Positions 18,560-50,427 of a DNA stretch of 64,000 nt are shown here, piece by piece. The notes under the pieces were generated by a model, which was not told the DNA's origin, ran no database searches, and saw only the letters and a program-made list of their open reading frames with translations. Position 1 is the stretch's first letter; every line of letters begins with the position of its first letter. The stretch lies in contig MCFE01000049.1 of assembly GCA_002104905.1 (NCBI GenBank), forward strand, positions 1 to 64,000, read 5' to 3'. The DNA comes from Basidiobolus meristosporus CBS 931.73 (Eukaryota; Fungi; Basidiobolomycota). Made by a program: the position numbers and the translations under genes.

Positions 18560-21500
18560 CTAGCGTTTCTCCTTCACGAACATCTGAAGGCAAACAAAGG
18601 ATAAGATAATAAAAATGCAGAACATCGAAGACAGCTTGATCACATCTGGCCAGAAGTTGGCTGCGTTAAATCCGAAGGTCGACAAGATCGTCGCGCCGGG
18701 AATGTCGATTTGTAAGCCGTACTTCTTCTCCGTCAATTGAAGATACTTCATTTCATTGACGAGCATAGCCTCCAGCGCGTAATTGAAGAACGATAAATCC
18801 TTCAACCACGTTAGATACGAAGGGATGGAGTCCTTGTTGAGAAGCAAGCCGCCGAACAGCATGCTGAAAAGCATCACAAGGCTGCTCAACAGATTGGCCA
18901 CTGACACTTCTTTGAACAGAATTCCTAGGAATAAGGAAATACTGGCGGCAGTCAGGTTGAACATTACAAGGACGAGCAAGAACTTCAAGAAATGCTCCAT
19001 GCCGGGTGCCAGACCAACCATGTTATAGATGATCACTCCCAAAAGGATCGGAGGAACAACTCGCAACGGGACAATATCAAACATCACCTTCGAGGCAAAG
19101 TACGTAATAGGAGCATAATAGCCATTGGCGCGCTCGCGAACGAACAGTATCCTCTCGCTTGCAAATACTTGAAGTGATGTGAGGCATCCGAATCCGAACA
19201 ATGCGCAAACGAAGAAGAAGACGCCCATGCGGTTCTGGAATCCTGCGATATCGTTGGTGACCTGGTAGAATAGGAGACCGCATAGCACGGCCAAGAAAAC
19301 GCTGATCACATAATGAGTCAACATCAGGTAGGGATTCCGGTATAGGTTCTTGAATGTGCGATCTGACAATATTCTATACTGGGTATACCATGAGGAGCGA
19401 CGATAGGTTCCAATGATGGGCAGATTGGCGTTATCGGTCTGGCTTGCGCTCACAATCCGCTCAATTTCATCTACAATGTTACGCGCCATATTGCAGCGTT
19501 TGTACTCTCTAACAAGCATGAGCAAGTGGCTAGACATTCCATCGATCGTCTCAGAATCCCTAGTAGAGGGAGTTGGGTTTCCATTGTTTCCAGCCCATGG
19601 GCTTACTTCCGTCTGCCAGGGGTTGCTGGCCTCGGGTGGAGCGGCGACAGGGTGCAGGTCGTCAAATGGGTTGGCTGTAGAGGTACGGCGCGGAGAATAT
19701 AGGGAGTCCTCTTGCATAACACGAATGGAACGTCTACGGTCACGCGACGTCTCAGGCTCTGCCACGCTGTTGGAGGTGGTCAACCCAGGGATAAGCTCCT
19801 CGTCATCTTCGAAATCTTCCTCGGGGGGCTTGACGGCATGTTTACTCAGGTCAACCACAAAATCAGCAATGTTGAATCCGAGGGGGCATGGATGTCCAAT
19901 GCTATCGAAATGGGCACGAACTTTGGAGGCCAAGCCCGAATAAATCATCCACCCATCAGCCAAGAGAACCAGTTGATCGAACAAAGCGAAAATGTTGCTG
20001 CGGGGCTGATGGATGGTGAAAATCACCGTTCTATTGTAGTTCCGCGCCAGCGTAACCAAACATTCAATGACGTTATAAGCGTTATAGGCATCCAAACCCG
20101 AGGTTGGCTCATCAAGAAAGAGAATGGATGGAGAAGTTACCAGCTCACAAGCGATGGATACGCGACGTTTCTCGCCACCGGAAATACCACGCGCGCCAGA
20201 GTCCCCAATCAAGCTATCCTTGATCCCCAAAATACCCAGTTCAGACATAGTTTCATAAACACGATGCTTCTTGGCCTCCAAAGACATGTTGCGTGGAAGA
20301 CGTAGCAAAGCGGAATAGAGGATCGTTTCGTAGACCGTGAGCGTAGACATCAAGGTGTCTTCCTGGTCGACATAGCCAACAACCCGCTTGAATTGAGAAT
20401 CACTAACCACTCTCCCATTAACATATATATCACCAGTAACCAAGCCCGATTTGTTTTTGCGGGCAAGGATATCCAAGAATGTGGTTTTTCCGGCACCTGT
20501 GCGAAGTGCAATCAAGTTAGTTGTCGGGTGTAAATGGTGTATGGTTGAGCTGCAAATTACCAGAGGCGCCCATGATGGCCATTACTTGTCCAGGCTTCAC
20601 GATACCATGCACATTGTTTAGAACTTGTTTCTTCCCAACCAAATAGTTAACGCCTCTGAACATGAGGGTGGCAGGAGTATGGTTGTCCATCAGTTTGCCG
20701 GCCTCATCGTCAGGATTATACGAGTCAAGAGGCAGATAATCACTAGGGTTTTCTTTGTTCTTGCGAGCAAGGTACACGGCGCCTACCAAAGAAATCAGGA
20801 TCAAGCAAAGAGGTGGAGCACAAAAATGGCCAACATACCTACGCCAATTCCGATTACGAAAAGCAGAACGGATACAATGGAGACGATCATGAGAGGGGTG
20901 TTTTTGGGCTTTTCAGGTCTCTACATCGGCACCGCGGTTAGTCATGTAACAAACAAATAGGAGTGAAAACGGGCAACATACAACGTAACCAGGAACTTGG
21001 GTGTAATGCAAGCACTCGCCAGAGTGGCAATCCAAGGTGATGTATGAGTCGCCGAAAACAGACAAGATTAAATCGTTCATGGCCGGTTCTATACATGATA
21101 ACTAAGAATCAACGGTCACTGGGCACATGTATCATGGATAGTTACCCTCAAATCTACACCCGTCTTTGGTGTTGCACTTGAAAGATGCAGGTCCTTCAAT
21201 ATCTTCCTCCAAAAACTCCGAAATATCTAGACATATGAGGATCCAAAGCTGGTTAGCAATGAGTGCGAGCGCCATTACCCATTCCACACATACCAATCGA
21301 GCCTTCTTGTCCACATAGGATCTGACCGGGCATACACTTGCAGCGAATATTCGGGCAAGTGTAGTATGTAGCATTCCCATCATAGCTATGATCTAAATGC
21401 GAGGGGGGTTAACCATCAAGTTATTAATCGAAGACTGCTCAAGATTGGAACATTACCTTCACGGAATTTGCAATGATCGAGAGTACAATAAAAGGATTCA

Positions 21501-22422: not shown

Positions 22423-24657
22423 CTAGGGAAGGGGCTCTGTAGTGTAGGAGAAACTGGGATTTACAAGAAGTAGAGAAAACTTGAGAATATACGTAACCAA
22501 ACTCTATCCCTACTTGGAATTGTTCTGAGGAATAAAAGGAACAATTAGAACTATCTTGTCCTACGATCAAAAATATCTCATCAAGTGTTGACTCTGCACT
22601 TGACCAACTCAGAACCCTTTACCTTATTTTATACAAACATAGAGTTGATTATTTTGTATAGAATCGACGTTTCACTCCAATTGCAGTTACATTTCCATTT
22701 ACAAATCACATTGAAGGCAAGTTTCCGAGCTATTAGATCCAATGAGCGGACCGAAAAATTGGACACCAATTACGAACCATTGGTTTGAGGATTGTGGATT
22801 GTGTGGTAAAGCCTCACCTGGCCGAGAGAAATGCAGGGCATGCGGAGACCATGGGCTTGACCTGTGCTGACATGCTATGCAAACAGACTCCGAAGCACCC
22901 ATATGAAGCACCAGCTGGACGACACAGCAGCGCTTTCTGAGCGCCTATCCCTCAGTCGCAAGCCCCACACACCATCATAACACGGTTTCGCTTTGTGCTC
23001 ACCTGATAATGACAACGCGTGCGGAAGGCTCTCCCAACATGCTTGCCTATTGACCGTTGCAAAGCACAGGATGCCCAAGCACAGCTGGGCGAACCCTCGA
23101 CTCCATGACGGGCACCGTGTCTCGAGGCCAGGCTACCTCGGAGTGATTTTGGAGCGATGATATCACCGATACGTAAATCAGGCATGTATTCAACCATTCA
23201 GCAATATAGACGATGACAAGCTTCCTGTGACTAACCAGGATTACCTCACATTAAGCCACATATATGTGGCCAATTCAGTTCCATTTTTCCTTGATCATTC
23301 AACCCTTCTGTATGATGGATTTAGCCAGTCAACCGAGCTCCTCACGGGATAAGCGAGGTTGGATTGGCGAGCAGCCATCACTAGACTGCGAGTACAAGGT
23401 CGAATGGACATATGGAATCTCACCTGTTGCCTGTCTATCCCAAAGAGTAATTTGCACTTGCTACTCTTGGAATTATCTATCCATATATGATAGATCAGCC
23501 CCTAAATACGAAAGGGAACTGGTCGATTGATTTGGTCGAATATTTCCAATGTGGCTCTGATTGCTTTCTTGGTTTGTAACGGATGGTAACTATGATCACT
23601 CATGTGACCTAGTGATGGATAGAGTAGGAACAGGTGCCATATCGGGCCTGCTAGTAGCCCGGTCCAAAGGCAAGGTGGCTTTCGACAGTGATCAATAGCT
23701 GCATGGGGACATTTCTGGCTAGGATGGTCTTGATGTATCTGCGGAATTTCTAGACGCTCATAGTGCATTTCCTAATCAGTCCGTATGCTTTTAGCCTTTT
23801 AAGTGCAAAAATTAGATTCAAGCAAAGTGAAATCGTTTCAAGCAGCAAATCTACACCCACTCATGCTGACACTTCCGCTCAAAGCACAAGCCGTTCACAT
23901 ACCAGAAGCCCCCGGCATTCTGTGTTCGCAGGAGATTTTGATCTCCGATATCTTACACTCGAACTGCCTACCAAGCATCTGCCGCTTTCCTTAATGGGCT
24001 CCCAAGGTCTGCCTTAACGGTGGTTTTGCAGACATTCCTTAATCGATAGATTGTTCGGATTGATCATGTCGCATATTAATCTGATTTGCCGAGTAGATAA
24101 TCTCGTGTGCTCCAAGACAAGCCAAGTGTGAGGAGTTGTCATCGTCCAACGCAGCCAGCTGCCTTGGGAAAAAAGAGCCTGATGTTGCGGTCTGCTGCAA
24201 CCTTGTAATCCCTCAACCGCCCCTTGAGTAACCAGTATATCACTGGCCGGGCATGCTGGCTAGAGTAAAGAATACCAACCAGGGCCTGGCAAATGCTTAG
24301 CTGACCAAATGCCCCGAAACACCCTCGCTGGCCAGTTCACGGCACGGTTTGCGTGCAGTGTATCTCCACAAGAGTTACTTTGGATCTGGCCAGGGAAATG
24401 CGACACCAAGGCAGCGAGGAAATCAGGAATATTGCAATAGTATCCAGAAATCCCGCCCTATTTCTTTTAATTGGCTCGAGAAAACTCAATATATTGATTC
24501 CATTTAGGCTGCTCTCAATCTGTCATTTGACCAGATGCGGATAAGCTTGACCAGTTTATTTTCTCTATTCAACAGTTTTTTTCTTGGTGAAACTATATTC
24601 GTGCATCAATTGGAATATCTATTGAACTCCAGTTTCGACAAGTGATTAATTGCGCTC

Positions 24658-43819: not shown

Positions 43820-44583
43820 ATGTCCGAAATTCGTCGCAAATTAGTTATTGTTGGTGATGGCGCCTGTGGTAAAACCTGTCTTTTGATCGTCTTCTCCAAA
43901 GGAACATTCCCTGAAGTAATTCCTTTGACTTGTTCATCCCTTGTGTCTTTAATCTCATCCCTTACTCCTATGTAGGTCTACGTCCCAACTGTGTTTGAAA
44001 ATTACGTAGCCGATGTCGAGGTTGATGGCAAAAGAGTCGAGTTAGCTCTATGGGATACTGCTGGACAAGAGGATTACGATCGTCTCCGTCCACTTTCTTA
44101 CCCCGACTCCCACGTCATCTTGATCTGTTTCTCGGTTGATTCTCCTGATTCTCTAGAAAACGTACAAGAGAAGGTAATTTTCCACAGGGTTTATCTGACA
44201 TCAGCTTTGTTTTAATCATCCTTTGGTTTATTAGTGGATTTCTGAGGTTCTTCACTTTTGCGCTGGCCTTCCCATTATCCTCGTTGGATGCAAAAAGGAC
44301 TTGCGCAACGACCCCAGAACTATCGAAGAGCTTAGAAAGCAAGGTCAATCCCCTGTTTCCCAAGATCAGGTTTGTTGCACTCGACTGTCTTCTGTAGTTG
44401 GAACGGTTTTTAATAGTGATACTTTTCTAGGCTTCCGCAGTCGCCAACAAAATCGGTGCCTATAAATACTTGGAGTGTTCTGCTAAGGAAAATGACGGAG
44501 TTCGCCAAGTGTTTGAACACGCTACACGTGCTGCCTTACTTACCAAGACAAAGCAGAAGAAGAAGGGATGTTTGGTCCTGTAA
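43820..44583 (+). CDS. RHO1: Rho1 GTPase (four exons)
   Basis: [53 protein letters not shown]. Confidence 0.97.
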
Positions 44584-45170
44584 TACGTCGTTCCATTATT
44601 ACTCCCATTTCGACTCATTTACGCCCCTAATGAACTAGTCAAACATGTTCTCAACCACTGTAGCGTCCTAGTTGATCACGACTAGATATTTTACACTTTT
44701 AATATACTCTCCCAAGATTCTAAAAACATCGTCAGAATATACTCTTGACCGATTGTTCTTGTTGGTCAGGTGGAGTGGGTTGGCTTCACTCAATTCCGAA
44801 AGGAGCAATGTTTGAAATCGTGGTGAACGATTGCATTGGGTGACCGTTGGGTATTTTGAGATGGATAATCGTCTAGAGAAAATTGACTGGAGATAATCAG
44901 AGGCTTCGCCTTGAATATCTCACGCTCTGTACGATTATCTATACAAATGGCAATTGCTTTTCATCGGGATCTTAGATGCAAGTTACACACTTGGGTGAGA
45001 AAGCAGAGTTACCTCAAATAGTTTCATCAATAATCTCTCGCAAATAAGGTTTAGTAAAATTCCCACTAAAAAGAGTAAGATATCCTAGATACATCAGGAA
45101 TTTGGGAAATTTTTGAGCTGTTGGAAAATATTCTTCTCGCATTCACCAGTAGACGACAGTCTGGAACGAA

Positions 45171-46890
45171 ATGAACAGCTTGCTGAACGCCCGGGTTTCT
45201 CTTGGTAGGTTGGGACTTGCTTCCACCAAACGTGCTGTAAGGCAAAAGCACAAGGTACTTCTCGGGGAATTCTTCATACTTGTCTACACCACGCTCACGC
45301 TCATTCCTGCAACTTGCTCAAGTTGGCCTTGTACACTTCAAGACTGAACGACACAAAGACAAACCTGGCTTTTGAAGAATGGTTTGTCTATTTTTTGGTA
45401 CCGTTTTGCGTATAGCAAGATCAAGTATGAACCTTTCTATGGGTAAAAGGTTATTTAGAGATACCGATCCGGAGATGTACATCCTTTATTTGTGGAGGAA
45501 TCGTAGTTGCGTGGTTATTGGCAGAAATCAAGTAGGTGCCTATCTCATCAGTTTTCCTGCTGGCAGAGAAGTAACAATTGAACATTCCAGAATCCTTGGA
45601 AAGAATGTAACATCCCGTTAATGCGAGAATTGGGGATCCCTTTAATCAGGAGACAAAGTGGCGGAGGCGCTGTATATCAGGTATGGATTTTCTTCGCTGA
45701 CAATGTGACGTTACTGCTCACACTTCCATACTAAATAGGATATGGGGAATTCTTGCTATACTATATTGATGCCTAAGGAAGTCTTCAACAGAAGAACCAG
45801 CGCGGAACTGGTGACCAGAGCTTTGCTGGACTGTGATATCCCAGCATATGTTAATGAGAGAAGCGATATTACTGTGGACGGGTTCAAAATATCCTTTTCT
45901 ATGATCTTGTGGTCATTCATTCTATACCGAGTTTCATCCATATCCTTTAACTCTCTCTTAACGTTTCCGGGTCCGCGTATAAACTTACCAACCGCAGGGC
46001 GTACCACCACGGAACTATGCTCATTGACACCGAGCTTTCGAATCTGTCAGGATGTCTCCGGAGCAACAAGGTAAATCCGGACTGAGCCGCTATGCATATG
46101 ACCGAATCGCCAAATTGCTTACCGCGTCGAACAGGAGTATATGACTACCAAGGGTGTGGAAAGCGTACGGTCGAAAGTGACCAATTTGCGACCATATTCG
46201 TATACAATTGATCATCAGATGTTTAGCGAAGCGGTGGCTAAAGAATTCTGTAATCACTACGGAGTGGAAAAGCTGGAGGTTCGTTTTGATCCAAATGCCA
46301 GCTTATTGAAGAGTTGATTCTTATGCCAGTTTGACAGCCTACCATCATGGACGATGACTTTATTCGGAAGCATCCAAAGATCCAAGAGTACAAGAATAAT
46401 ATCGATGTAATGGCTCTGAGTCGTGGAGGTTCTTTTGCTAGTTTAATCTAACCTTTAATGTTGTTTTTGCTTAAGACCTGGGAATGGATATATGGGCAAA
46501 CCCCCGAGTTCACTGTCGATACCACTCATGTGATTCACCAAGAGAAAGTGGTACCGTATATGCTCTAAGCATATGCTTGGGTGTTTTCGTAACTAACTTC
46601 AATGACATTATAGAAATTGTTCCTTCGCTCCAAAGGTGGCCTCATCCTCGATGCACAAATTACACAACCTGTCAATAGAGCTTACGTCGATGCCATGTGC
46701 AATTCACTCAAAGGTAATATGGGTTTGCTGGAGAATCGGCATACGGTGTTATGCTAACCAAGAATATATAGGTGCCCGCTATGAACCACAGAGTATAGCG
46801 GCTGCATTTGCCAGAATATCTGGTGAAGTTCCATTAGAGGACTACGAATTTGCTGTCCAGTTACACAATTGGCTAAAGCAGATATTATGA
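45171..46890 (+). CDS. LIP3: Mitochondrial lipoate-protein ligase / lipoyltransferase, LplA family (multi-exon)
   Basis: Presequence-like N-terminus, [79 protein letters not shown]. Confidence 0.93.
45889..45962 (+). other. U12-type (minor spliceosome) AT-AC intron
   Basis: 5' ATATCCTTT, branch TCCTTTAAC at 45943-45951, 3' ...TTAAC; removal restores DGFK|VSGSAYK. Confidence 0.92.
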
Positions 46891-47618
46891 TCATCTCTGC
46901 ATTAGAAATCATTCCGTTCCCAACCTTTCCTCATAGATTTACATCATCTACGCAAGAAAATCCATTTTTTCACACACTCTGGCTAAAGGTTTACCCACCC
47001 TTTTGAGCCCAACATATACCCAAGTGTTTCAAGAAAAGTCTCAAGAGCATGCATAGCTAATAAACCTGTTGACTCGGTTAATGGAGAAAGGGGCCCCAAA
47101 TGTGTGACTGCCTCCTAGTGAGCTATGTAGACTAGCGATAATGGAGATCTTGAATTTATTAGCTGAATACCGGAATGAGATGCAGATTAAGCATCAACGT
47201 GTTGACCTGTGCTTTAATATAGTTGATCTGTATTACAATCCTCTCATGTCTAGCTTTAAACCTTCGAGGTTTATCAAAGTCACTCAATGTCGTAGCTGGG
47301 CTACGTTTTGATTCTTTGTTTCGTGGCGGAAGTGCAAGAGCGTACTCTGTACTACTAGGATTATTGCTTAGTCAAGAGTAATCCTTGGATACCTGCACCT
47401 ATCGGCCGTGGCTAATTCATGCATCCACTACCATGACTAAGTCGAATTAAGAATGTGGGATTTGTAATTCCGTCATTTCGTCATGTGATATGTGCCTTGA
47501 GTATTCCTCCTGGAAAGGTATCCAGTATGATTGCTATAAAAATTAACCTTCACCTGGTTATGCAATCCATTCATTCTGGTAGCCATATTCGTAGCTATCT
47601 ATAACCAATTGTTCACAT

Positions 47619-50427
47619 ATGCCACAAGAGCTTCGCTTTGATAACCGTGTGGTAATCGTCACCGGTGGTGGCGGGGGTGAGTCTTGCTTGGTGAAGAATC
47701 ACTCGCTTCTTTGGAAACGGCACTAAACAGCGTTTGCTTCGCAGGCCTTGGTAAAGCATATTCACTATTCTTCGCCGAACGCGGTGCGGCAGTTGTAGTC
47801 AACGATCTAGGTAGCTCTCAATCTGGTGGAGGAGCTTCTAGCAGCGCCGCAGACGCAGTTGTCGCGGAGATCATAAAGAAGGGAGGCAAAGCAATCGCAA
47901 GCTATGATTCGGTTGAGAATGGAGAAAAAATTGTAGCTGCTGCTATGAAGGCATATGGTCGCATTGATATTCTTATTAATAATGCTGGGTAAGTTCAGCC
48001 TGGAAGTTTTCCTCGGGGCCTCTCGACTAAAAAGAACTTCACTGTAGTATCCTACGTGATAAATCATTTGCCAACATGACCGACAACGACTGGGATATGG
48101 TCCAGAAAGTACACGTTCGTGGCGCATACAAGGTCACTAAGGCTTGTTGGGAGATTTTCCGAAAGCAGAAGTACGGTAGAATCATCATGACTTCTTCTGC
48201 CGCTGGTATATATGGAAACTTCGGCCAAGCCAATTATAGTGCTGCTAAGCTTGCATTAGCTACATTTGGGTTTACCCTGGCAAGGGAGGGAGTTAAATAC
48301 AATATCCATACCAACATCATTGCCCCTATCGCTGCTTCACGATTGACTGAGACAGTGATGCCACCCGAGTTGCTCGAAAAATTGAGCCCCGAATACATCA
48401 CCCCGGTTGTTGCTTATTTATGCCATGAATCCGCTCAAGAAAACGGGGGCTTGTTCGAACTTGGCGCCGGGTTTGTAGCCAAACTTCGATGGGAGGTGTC
48501 ATCAGGCAAAGTATTCAAGGCTGATTCCACGTTCACCCCAGCTGCGATTGCCGCCAAGTGGGACGCAGTTACGGACTTTTCTACTTCTACCCATCCCTCT
48601 TCGATCGGCGAAACAAACTGGATTGAGCATCTTGAAGCTGCCAAAAGGCTCTCTTCCAACCAGCAAGTTGAGCCACTCCGCTACGATGGTCAGGTGGTTA
48701 TTGTTACCGGTGCTGGAAATGGACTAGGCCGGGAGTATGCCAAACTTTTCTCCCGACTTGGAGCGTCCGTTGTTGTCAACGATTTGAACAACGCAGATCA
48801 GGTGGTTGAGGAAATCATGCGCGGGGGCGGCAAGGCCGTTGCCAGTACCCATTCGGTCGAAGATGGTGAGAAAGTCATTTCCACCGCGATGAAAGCATTT
48901 GGTAGGATCGATGTGGTCGTCAACAATGCAGGGATTCTTCGGGATAAATCATTTGTGAAAATGTCGGATCAGGATTGGGATCTGGTCCAAAATGTCCACC
49001 TGAGAGGTACATACAAAATGTGCAAGGCTGCTTGGCCCATTTTCCAAAAGCAAAAGTATGGCCGAATCATTAACACCTGCTCCTCTGTTGGGCTTTTTGG
49101 GAATTTCGGCCAAGCCAACTATAGTGCTGCCAAGGCTGGCATTTTATCCCTAAGCAACAGTCTTGCCATCGAGGGAAGAAAGTACAACATCGTAGTCAAC
49201 ACCATTGCTCCTCATGCTGGTACAGCCATGACTGCTACGATCATGCCACCGGAGATGGTGGAGATGTTCAAGCCTGAATATGTCGCTCCATTGGTTGGCT
49301 TCCTCGGTCATGAGAAGTGTTTGGAGACTGGTTCCTGCTTCCACGTTGGTAGTTGCTGGGTTGGAAAGGTTAGATGGCAGCGGTCCGGTGGCCATTCTTT
49401 TCCTTGTAACCAAAAGCTCACACCTGAAGCAGTCGCTTCTAAGTGGGTGAACATATGTAACTTCGATGATGGGAGAGCCCACTATCCATCAAGCACAAAG
49501 GAATCGCTTGAAGCAATCTACAAAAACCTCAACCAGACAGAGCAGGAAGCCTCAAATCCCGAGCCATTCCAAGGCAAGGAGTACCCGCCTGTCAAGTTTG
49601 TGTACTCTGAGCGAGACGTTATCTTATACGCACTTGGTGTTGGTGCTACCCGTCACGACCTACCTTTGGTGTATGAAAACTCGCCAGATTTCATGGCGCT
49701 TCCAGTGTTTGGGGTTATTCCTTCCTTCTCCAGCATGAAAACGGTTCCCTATACCGACTTTCTCCCTCCTTTTAACCGGATGATGTTGGTACACGGGGAG
49801 CAATACCTTCGTTTGAGGAAGGCAATCCCTACCTCTGGTACCTTGATTTCCAAACCTCGCATCATCGATATCCTCGATAAGGGAAAAGGGGTTGTTGTTA
49901 TCCTTGGTGTTGAAACGTCCGATGAAGCTGGAGATGTCATTTTTGAAAACGAGTATTCCCTCTTTATCCGTGGTATCAAAGGTGTAGGAAGCAAGCAAGG
50001 CAGAGATCGTGGTGTAGCCACCGCATCAAACCAAATTCCAGATCGCAAACCAGATATGGTTGTCCAAGAGAAAACCAGCGAAGACCTTGCCGCATTATAT
50101 CGCCTCAGTGGTGATCCAAACCCTTTGCATATCGACCCCGCGATGTCAGCGAAGGGCGGCTTCGATGTACCCATTCTTCATGGGCTCTGCTCGCTAGGGA
50201 TCGCCGGAAAGCACATCTTCAAGGCATATGGGGGCGGAAAGGCTGATGCCTTCAAAACTGTCAAGGCCCGGTTCGCCAAGCACGTATTCCCCGGAGAAAC
50301 GCTAGAAACCCAAATGTGGAGGGAGGGTAGCAAGGTTATCTTCCAAGTGCGTGTGGTCGAAAGGGACGTTATTGCAGTCGCCAATGCTGCAGTGGAGTTG
50401 AACACAAATATACCCTCTAGGTTGTAA
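47619..50427 (+). CDS. FOX2: Peroxisomal multifunctional beta-oxidation enzyme (hydratase-dehydrogenase-epimerase)
   Basis: Two SDR domains ([25 protein letters not shown]), MaoC hydratase [15 protein letters not shown]-terminal PTS1 SRL. Confidence 0.97.

Follow-up and report, generated by a model that had tools for sequence, protein, structure and literature searches.

The 64,000-nt stretch of Basidiobolus meristosporus DNA analysed here (the window) contains a LIP3/LIPT1-family lipoyltransferase gene with nine GT-AG introns and a single AT-AC intron, intron 5 (Table 1). Alignment and family scans identified an LplA catalytic domain in the predicted protein, including the lysine equivalent to K133 of E. 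coli LplA, a residue that belongs to a triple mutant abolishing LplA activity (10.1101/2024.11.22.624956). Exon 1 encodes seven R/K and no D/E residues, and this basic, acid-free N-terminus appears to resemble a mitochondrial presequence. From the family scans together with the N-terminal presequence, we infer orthology to Lip3/LIPT1. The original prediction had named the product a lipoate ligase; the analogy to yeast Lip3 and human LIPT1 (PMC7831266) makes a Lip3/LIPT1-type lipoyl transferase more probable than a free-lipoate ligase. At the position equivalent to LplA N121, in exon 5 (about 45859-45870), B. meristosporus has Ser (RSD), and Basidiobolus ranarum and the metagenomic fungi described below have Asn (RND).

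Table 1 The LIP3 gene of B. meristosporus, its intron 5 and corresponding loci in other fungi. Positions are those of the window unless a locus is named; slashes mark exon–intron boundaries.
Feature	Position	Strand	Basis or detail
LIP3/LIPT1-family lipoyltransferase gene, 11 exons, 359 codons	45171-46890	+	Exon-by-exon translation, length sum, Pfam and NCBIfam tiling
Exon 5, final codon Lys (45886-45888) matching E. coli LplA K133	45739-45888	+	Alignment, profile tiling
Intron 5, U12-type AT-AC, 74 nt, phase 0	45889-45962	+	Signals and frame; B. ranarum ortholog at L002 7761-7837 (77 nt)
U12-type 5′ splice site ATATCCTTT	45889-45897	+	7/7 against TATCCTT at +2 to +8
U12-type branch site TCCTTTAAC	45943-45951	+	B. 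ranarum counterpart TCCTTAAT
AC 3′ terminus	45961-45962	+	AC likewise in B. ranarum, L008, L011 and L013
Exon 6, VSGSAY...HHGT motifs	45963-46070	+	Alignment, profile tiling, B. ranarum comparison
B. ranarum LIP3, syntenic ortholog	L002 6998-8749		Synteny, ten introns at the same places
L008 LIP3 intron, 59 nt	L008 7987-8045		AAG/ATGAGT..CAC/GTG
L011 LIP3 intron, 68 nt	L011 9999-10066		AAG/ATATGT..CAC/GTC
L013 LIP3 intron, 44 nt	L013 4358-4401		AAG/ATAGGT..TAC/GTC

Signals and junction of intron 5

The start of intron 5 corresponds to the U12-type 5′ site RTATCCTT through ATATCCTTT, and a CCTTAAC-like branch site lies within the range of about 10-20 nt from the 3′ end that marks U12-type introns; compared with such a CCTTAAC-like site, TCCTTTAAC carries one extra T, with 11 nt between the end of the motif and the end of the intron. 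Translation of the flanks has exon 5 ending in DGFK and exon 6 opening with VSGSAYK. When searched separately, the two exons tiled Pfam PF21948 without a gap (exon 5, 71-125; exon 6, 126-159) and did the same for TIGR00545 (78-130 and 131-166), and V134 of E. coli LplA is the first residue aligned with exon 6, which places intron 5 directly after the K133 equivalent. Removal of the intron restores the conserved frame, as the profile positions are contiguous across the junction. Its length is 2 mod 3, and keeping it would shift the frame and lead to a stop about 61-63 codons past the lysine. The original prediction that an AT-AC intron divides the enzyme at its conserved lysine motif, and that retention would truncate the product, was thus borne out in both respects.

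The 5′ octamer alone occurs at chance level (7 in the window against 5.45 expected), and simulated windows contain the full pattern of 5′ site, branch site and AC end about 5% of the time (mean 0.052), so that position and conservation are decisive for intron 5. A second ATATCCTTT at 45940-45951 overlaps the branch site; it is absent from B. ranarum and probably reflects chance.

No GT-AG or GC-AG pair was found within about 10 nt of the ends of intron 5. All 12 frame-restoring GT/GC-AG alternatives in B. meristosporus delete at least 35 exon nucleotides including VSGSAYK, and the GT-AG alternatives were rejected because of the loss of this motif. None of the GT/GC-AG alternatives gives 359 amino acids, the length of the public B. 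meristosporus model, which also has the same ends as the AT-AC gene model. This match in length suggests that the public model probably already includes the AT-AC intron and that the gene is probably not mis-modelled in this species.

Other matches to U12-like motifs in the window were set aside. The match at 20472 on the minus strand was rejected since it reads like continuous coding sequence, and those at 233, 23948, 31414 and 37709 were rejected for want of exon context. The stretch at 23948-24006 (59 nt), with ATATCTTAC ... TTTCCTTAAT ... AG, has a U12-like look and no evident exon context. We found no further convincing U12 intron within the 64,000 nt, in line with the original prediction, and an Rfam scan of the window detected no minor snRNA genes.

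Conservation of the intron within Basidiobolus

All ten intron places are common to LIP3 of B. meristosporus and B. ranarum. Intron 5 of B. ranarum has the same junction, the same ATATCCTTT, the branch counterpart TCCTTAAT and an AC end. Its first 10 nt are identical between the two species, whereas the other nine introns share only 1-5 nt at this end, even though the overall identity of intron 5 (49-57%; 56% in the interior) is the same as in other introns. Exon 6 differs between the species by 20 synonymous and no non-synonymous codon changes. The U12 signals have been conserved despite a diverged intron interior and heavily diverged synonymous sites. Given these signals, the exact in-frame K/V junction and the conservation in B. 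ranarum, we regard 45889-45962 as confirmed, at the level of sequence, to be a genuine U12-type AT-AC intron in Basidiobolus.

The original prediction had also held that gene finders limited to GT-AG introns would mis-model this gene. This probably does not apply to B. meristosporus, judging from the length of its public model. The public LIP3 model of B. ranarum has 310 amino acids against 362 expected from the exons and is mis-modelled somewhere. An in-frame GT-AG alternative to intron 5 exists in B. ranarum and adds 6-7 amino acids. Separately, intron 3 of the B. ranarum gene is GC-AG, and intron 5 has an AG in frame, 6 nt before its AC end, that could serve as a fallback 3′ site.

That the organism has a minor spliceosome, as originally predicted, was already known: Larue and Roy 2023 reported 249 minor introns in B. 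meristosporus, the highest density found in fungi (PMC10639083), and a second study reported 237, together with minor snRNA genes in such basal fungi, among which a divergent U4atac is named for B. meristosporus (PMC11347168). By itself the window intron is thus ordinary for a species published as rich in minor introns, and, because the public model appears to include it, it is probably already among the 237-249 catalogued ones.

Within Basidiobolus, U11/U12 would recognise ATATCCTTT and the branch site, and the minor spliceosome would join K/V in frame. Production of the presumed mitochondrial lipoyl transferase would then need minor splicing, because an intron left in place shifts the frame and truncates the protein. 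The original prediction extended this to mitochondrial lipoylation as a whole, which requires LIP3 to be single-copy in the genome. A block running from a Rho GTPase gene to FOX2 is present three times in B. meristosporus (window 43820-50427, L003 and L004), and LIP3 occurs only in the window copy, with no remnant in L003 or L004; single-copy status is shown as far as those two paralogous blocks are concerned. The FOX2 frame next to LIP3 in the window matches B. meristosporus CBS 931.73 at 100% identity. At L004 1-4934 the public model joins a TAF2/bromodomain gene to the Rho GTPase gene, which is probably an annotation error.

AT-AC introns at the same codon boundary in metagenomic fungi

When the exon-6 frame was used in a word search, contigs of fungal metagenomes gave 45 short gene-caller fragments, with the motif present in 44. 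In 42 of these 44, VSGSA directly follows a His or Tyr, against a background of 3.6% for these residues; the fragments are mutually related, so that a binomial p-value for this excess overstates their independence, and the His/Tyr codons could also end in AT, not AC. The sequence upstream is unconserved. His or Tyr at this place fits in-frame CAC or TAC (YAC) intron ends that have been read through; sampling of this kind misses introns ending in TAG and would show those ending in CAG. The exon-6 peptides of the fragments comprise 28 distinct sequences, down to 58% identity. Read-through fragments at the other side of the junction end in K/IG or K/MS, fitting AT intron starts, and the L013 cluster contains fourteen further ones ending in K/IG. 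Two fragments, P0161 and P0145, have Gln or Lys (one fragment each) before VSGSA, possible switches to an AG end. P0188, a long member of one fragment's cluster, was set aside as an unrelated protein. Searches with exon-5 sequence found nothing, and a U12-pattern DNA scan of the metagenomes requiring ATATCCTT, which is by design blind to converted forms, gave no matches.

We obtained DNA behind the fragments for three different, unrelated organisms (L008, L011 and L013). Together with the two Basidiobolus species, these make five loci in which the K/V boundary is identical and in phase 0; other LIP3 intron positions, including the flanking ones, are also common to Basidiobolus and the three metagenomic loci. 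At +5 and +6, the three metagenomic 5′ sites (ATGAGT, ATATGT and ATAGGT) all read GT. L008 and L011 match the U2-type site at 5/5 positions (+2 to +6), each without a U12 branch motif, and inspection of L013 likewise revealed a U2-type 5′ site and no U12 branch motif. The combination of G+5/T+6 with no U12 branch motif is a signature of major-spliceosome AT-AC introns, and the major spliceosome presumably splices out all three forms. In L008 and L011, use of a GT-AG alternative would harm the VSGSA motif, mildly so in L011, where the cost is 7 exon nucleotides.

An Atlas cluster containing fragments of this kind is eukaryotic, with Basidiomycota as the most frequent assignment, a weak lead that comes from one record. 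One metagenomic locus has a DUF6535 neighbour, and we take DUF6535 to be a basidiomycete family. The family also features in a study of Flammulina. GC content at the loci is 49-52% and the introns are short, at 44-68 nt, both of which fit Basidiomycota. Based on the Atlas cluster, the DUF6535 neighbour and the style of the genes, the hosts of L008, L011 and L013 are probably Basidiomycota. This phylum is described as being without convincing U12 introns or minor snRNAs (PMC10639083, PMC2846911). There is a report of minor snRNAs from one basidiomycete yeast. The new element, which the original prediction did not foresee, is that the intron has apparently lasted, with AT-AC ends but of the major type, in fungi probably devoid of a minor spliceosome.

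History of the K/V intron and comparison with known systems

Taken as a whole, we consider it likely from these comparisons that the intron is U12 AT-AC in Basidiobolus and underwent minor-to-major conversion toward Basidiomycota. We lean slightly towards the view that the K/V intron of LIP3, ancient in fungi and U12 AT-AC at first, passed to the major spliceosome with its AT-AC ends intact and persisted across Basidiomycota after loss of the minor spliceosome. The intron would be old, ancestrally U12 AT-AC, with Basidiobolus having kept that type; an origin from a duplicated coding stretch for K-I-S was rejected as needless given the old shared position. On the line to Basidiomycota, the intron would have gained G+5/T+6, been handed to the major spliceosome and so outlived the minor one. 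Its AT-AC ends would have been retained because both would have to change together, and escape by sliding would have been closed off because the flanking invariant lysine and VSGSA tolerate none.

Lin et al. 2010 (PMC2831892) proposed such a course as a much rarer route: once C has changed to G at +5 and T has then arisen at +6, an AT-AC intron passes to the major spliceosome and is 'trapped' there, both ends needing simultaneous change. The LIP3 intron, as far as its sequence goes, fits this prediction. The direction from minor to major is unrooted, as no Mucoromycota, chytrid or Ascomycota LIP3 orthologs were seen among the loci found, and FOX2 synteny in Umbelopsis, Bifiguratus and Syncephalis yielded none; it would follow from the minor-to-major rule of the literature.

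Unlikely, in our assessment, is a history in which the U12 intron of Basidiobolus is real but the direction of change ran the other way or cannot be known, a major-type AT-AC ancestor having become U12-type. In its favour are two features unusual among minor introns, phase 0 (about 22% of them) and location in a gene of small-molecule metabolism (in Rhizophagus, 5 metabolic genes observed against 24 expected). Larue and Roy found a low ancestral minor-intron density in Zoopagomycota and a high one in B. meristosporus (PMC10639083), and the Basidiobolus lineage is suspected of gaining minor introns. However, conversion is considered in the literature to run almost exclusively from minor to major, a U12 origin is the simplest explanation of the AT-AC ends, and a pyrimidine run after +6 in the metagenomic 5′ sites resembles a U12 tail, although this last point is suggestive only.

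We give a little less weight still to the idea that the other fungi are non-Dikarya, or have a diverged minor spliceosome, and that their AT-AC introns are degenerate U12 introns rather than converts. One loose U12-like pattern does occur in L008, away from any evident exon boundary, and the minor snRNAs of the one basidiomycete yeast would allow for it. Against it stand G+5/T+6 in three different 5′ sites with ATATCC in none, the absence of a U12 branch motif, and GC content, intron length and, at one locus, a DUF6535 neighbour that all fit Basidiomycota. Very improbable is an incidental U12 look, with the major spliceosome or a different junction serving for the window intron: read in frame the intron opens ISFS, mimicking VSGS, but no GT/GC-AG option keeps VSGSAYK, position +5 of the window 5′ site is C rather than G, B. 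ranarum retains the two U12 signals, and the AT-AC model equals the public model in length.

The window intron itself extends a known list by one, and the comparison across fungi matters more. Losing the minor spliceosome without breaking genes with AT-AC introns poses a standing question, usually answered by prior intron deletion or a switch to GT-AG. The LIP3 position, U12 AT-AC in Basidiobolus and U2-looking AT-AC in the metagenomic fungi, offers a natural before-and-after pair. If the minor-to-major reading is true, LIP3 would supply the 'trapped AT-AC' route with a direct case in orthologous genes, and the few AT-AC introns in mushroom and basidiomycete-yeast genomes might be fossils of a lost minor spliceosome. 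LIP3 is also predicted to be often mis-modelled at the active-site lysine in fungal annotations. A literature search that covered a minority of subscription journals found neither a paper on a LIP3 minor intron nor a report of an orthologous LIP3 U12-to-U2 AT-AC case.

[quoted passage not shown] The window intron shares its 5′ and branch signals and a similar short length with other U12 AT-AC introns of B. meristosporus (PMC10639083; PMC11347168), and is unlike usual minor introns in being phase 0 and in lying in a gene for a small-molecule metabolic enzyme. The introns of L008, L011 and L013 are, like U2-type AT-AC (type II) introns such as those of vertebrate SCN4A/SCN5A (PMC1557818), AT-AC with G+5 and T+6. 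AT-AC introns likewise occur in mushroom fungi of the Agaricomycetes: the accessible part of a report on Ganoderma lingzhi gives 13, at least one of them validated by sequencing, and in that part they are assigned neither a spliceosome class nor U12 ancestry and LIP3 is not named (PMC11590231). In the set of Lin et al. 2010, 87 of 87 converted introns were GT-AG (PMC2831892), whereas here U12 AT-AC and U2-looking AT-AC introns occupy one orthologous position, and, unlike the cases in that set, the U2-looking LIP3 introns are found in organisms that probably lack a minor spliceosome altogether.
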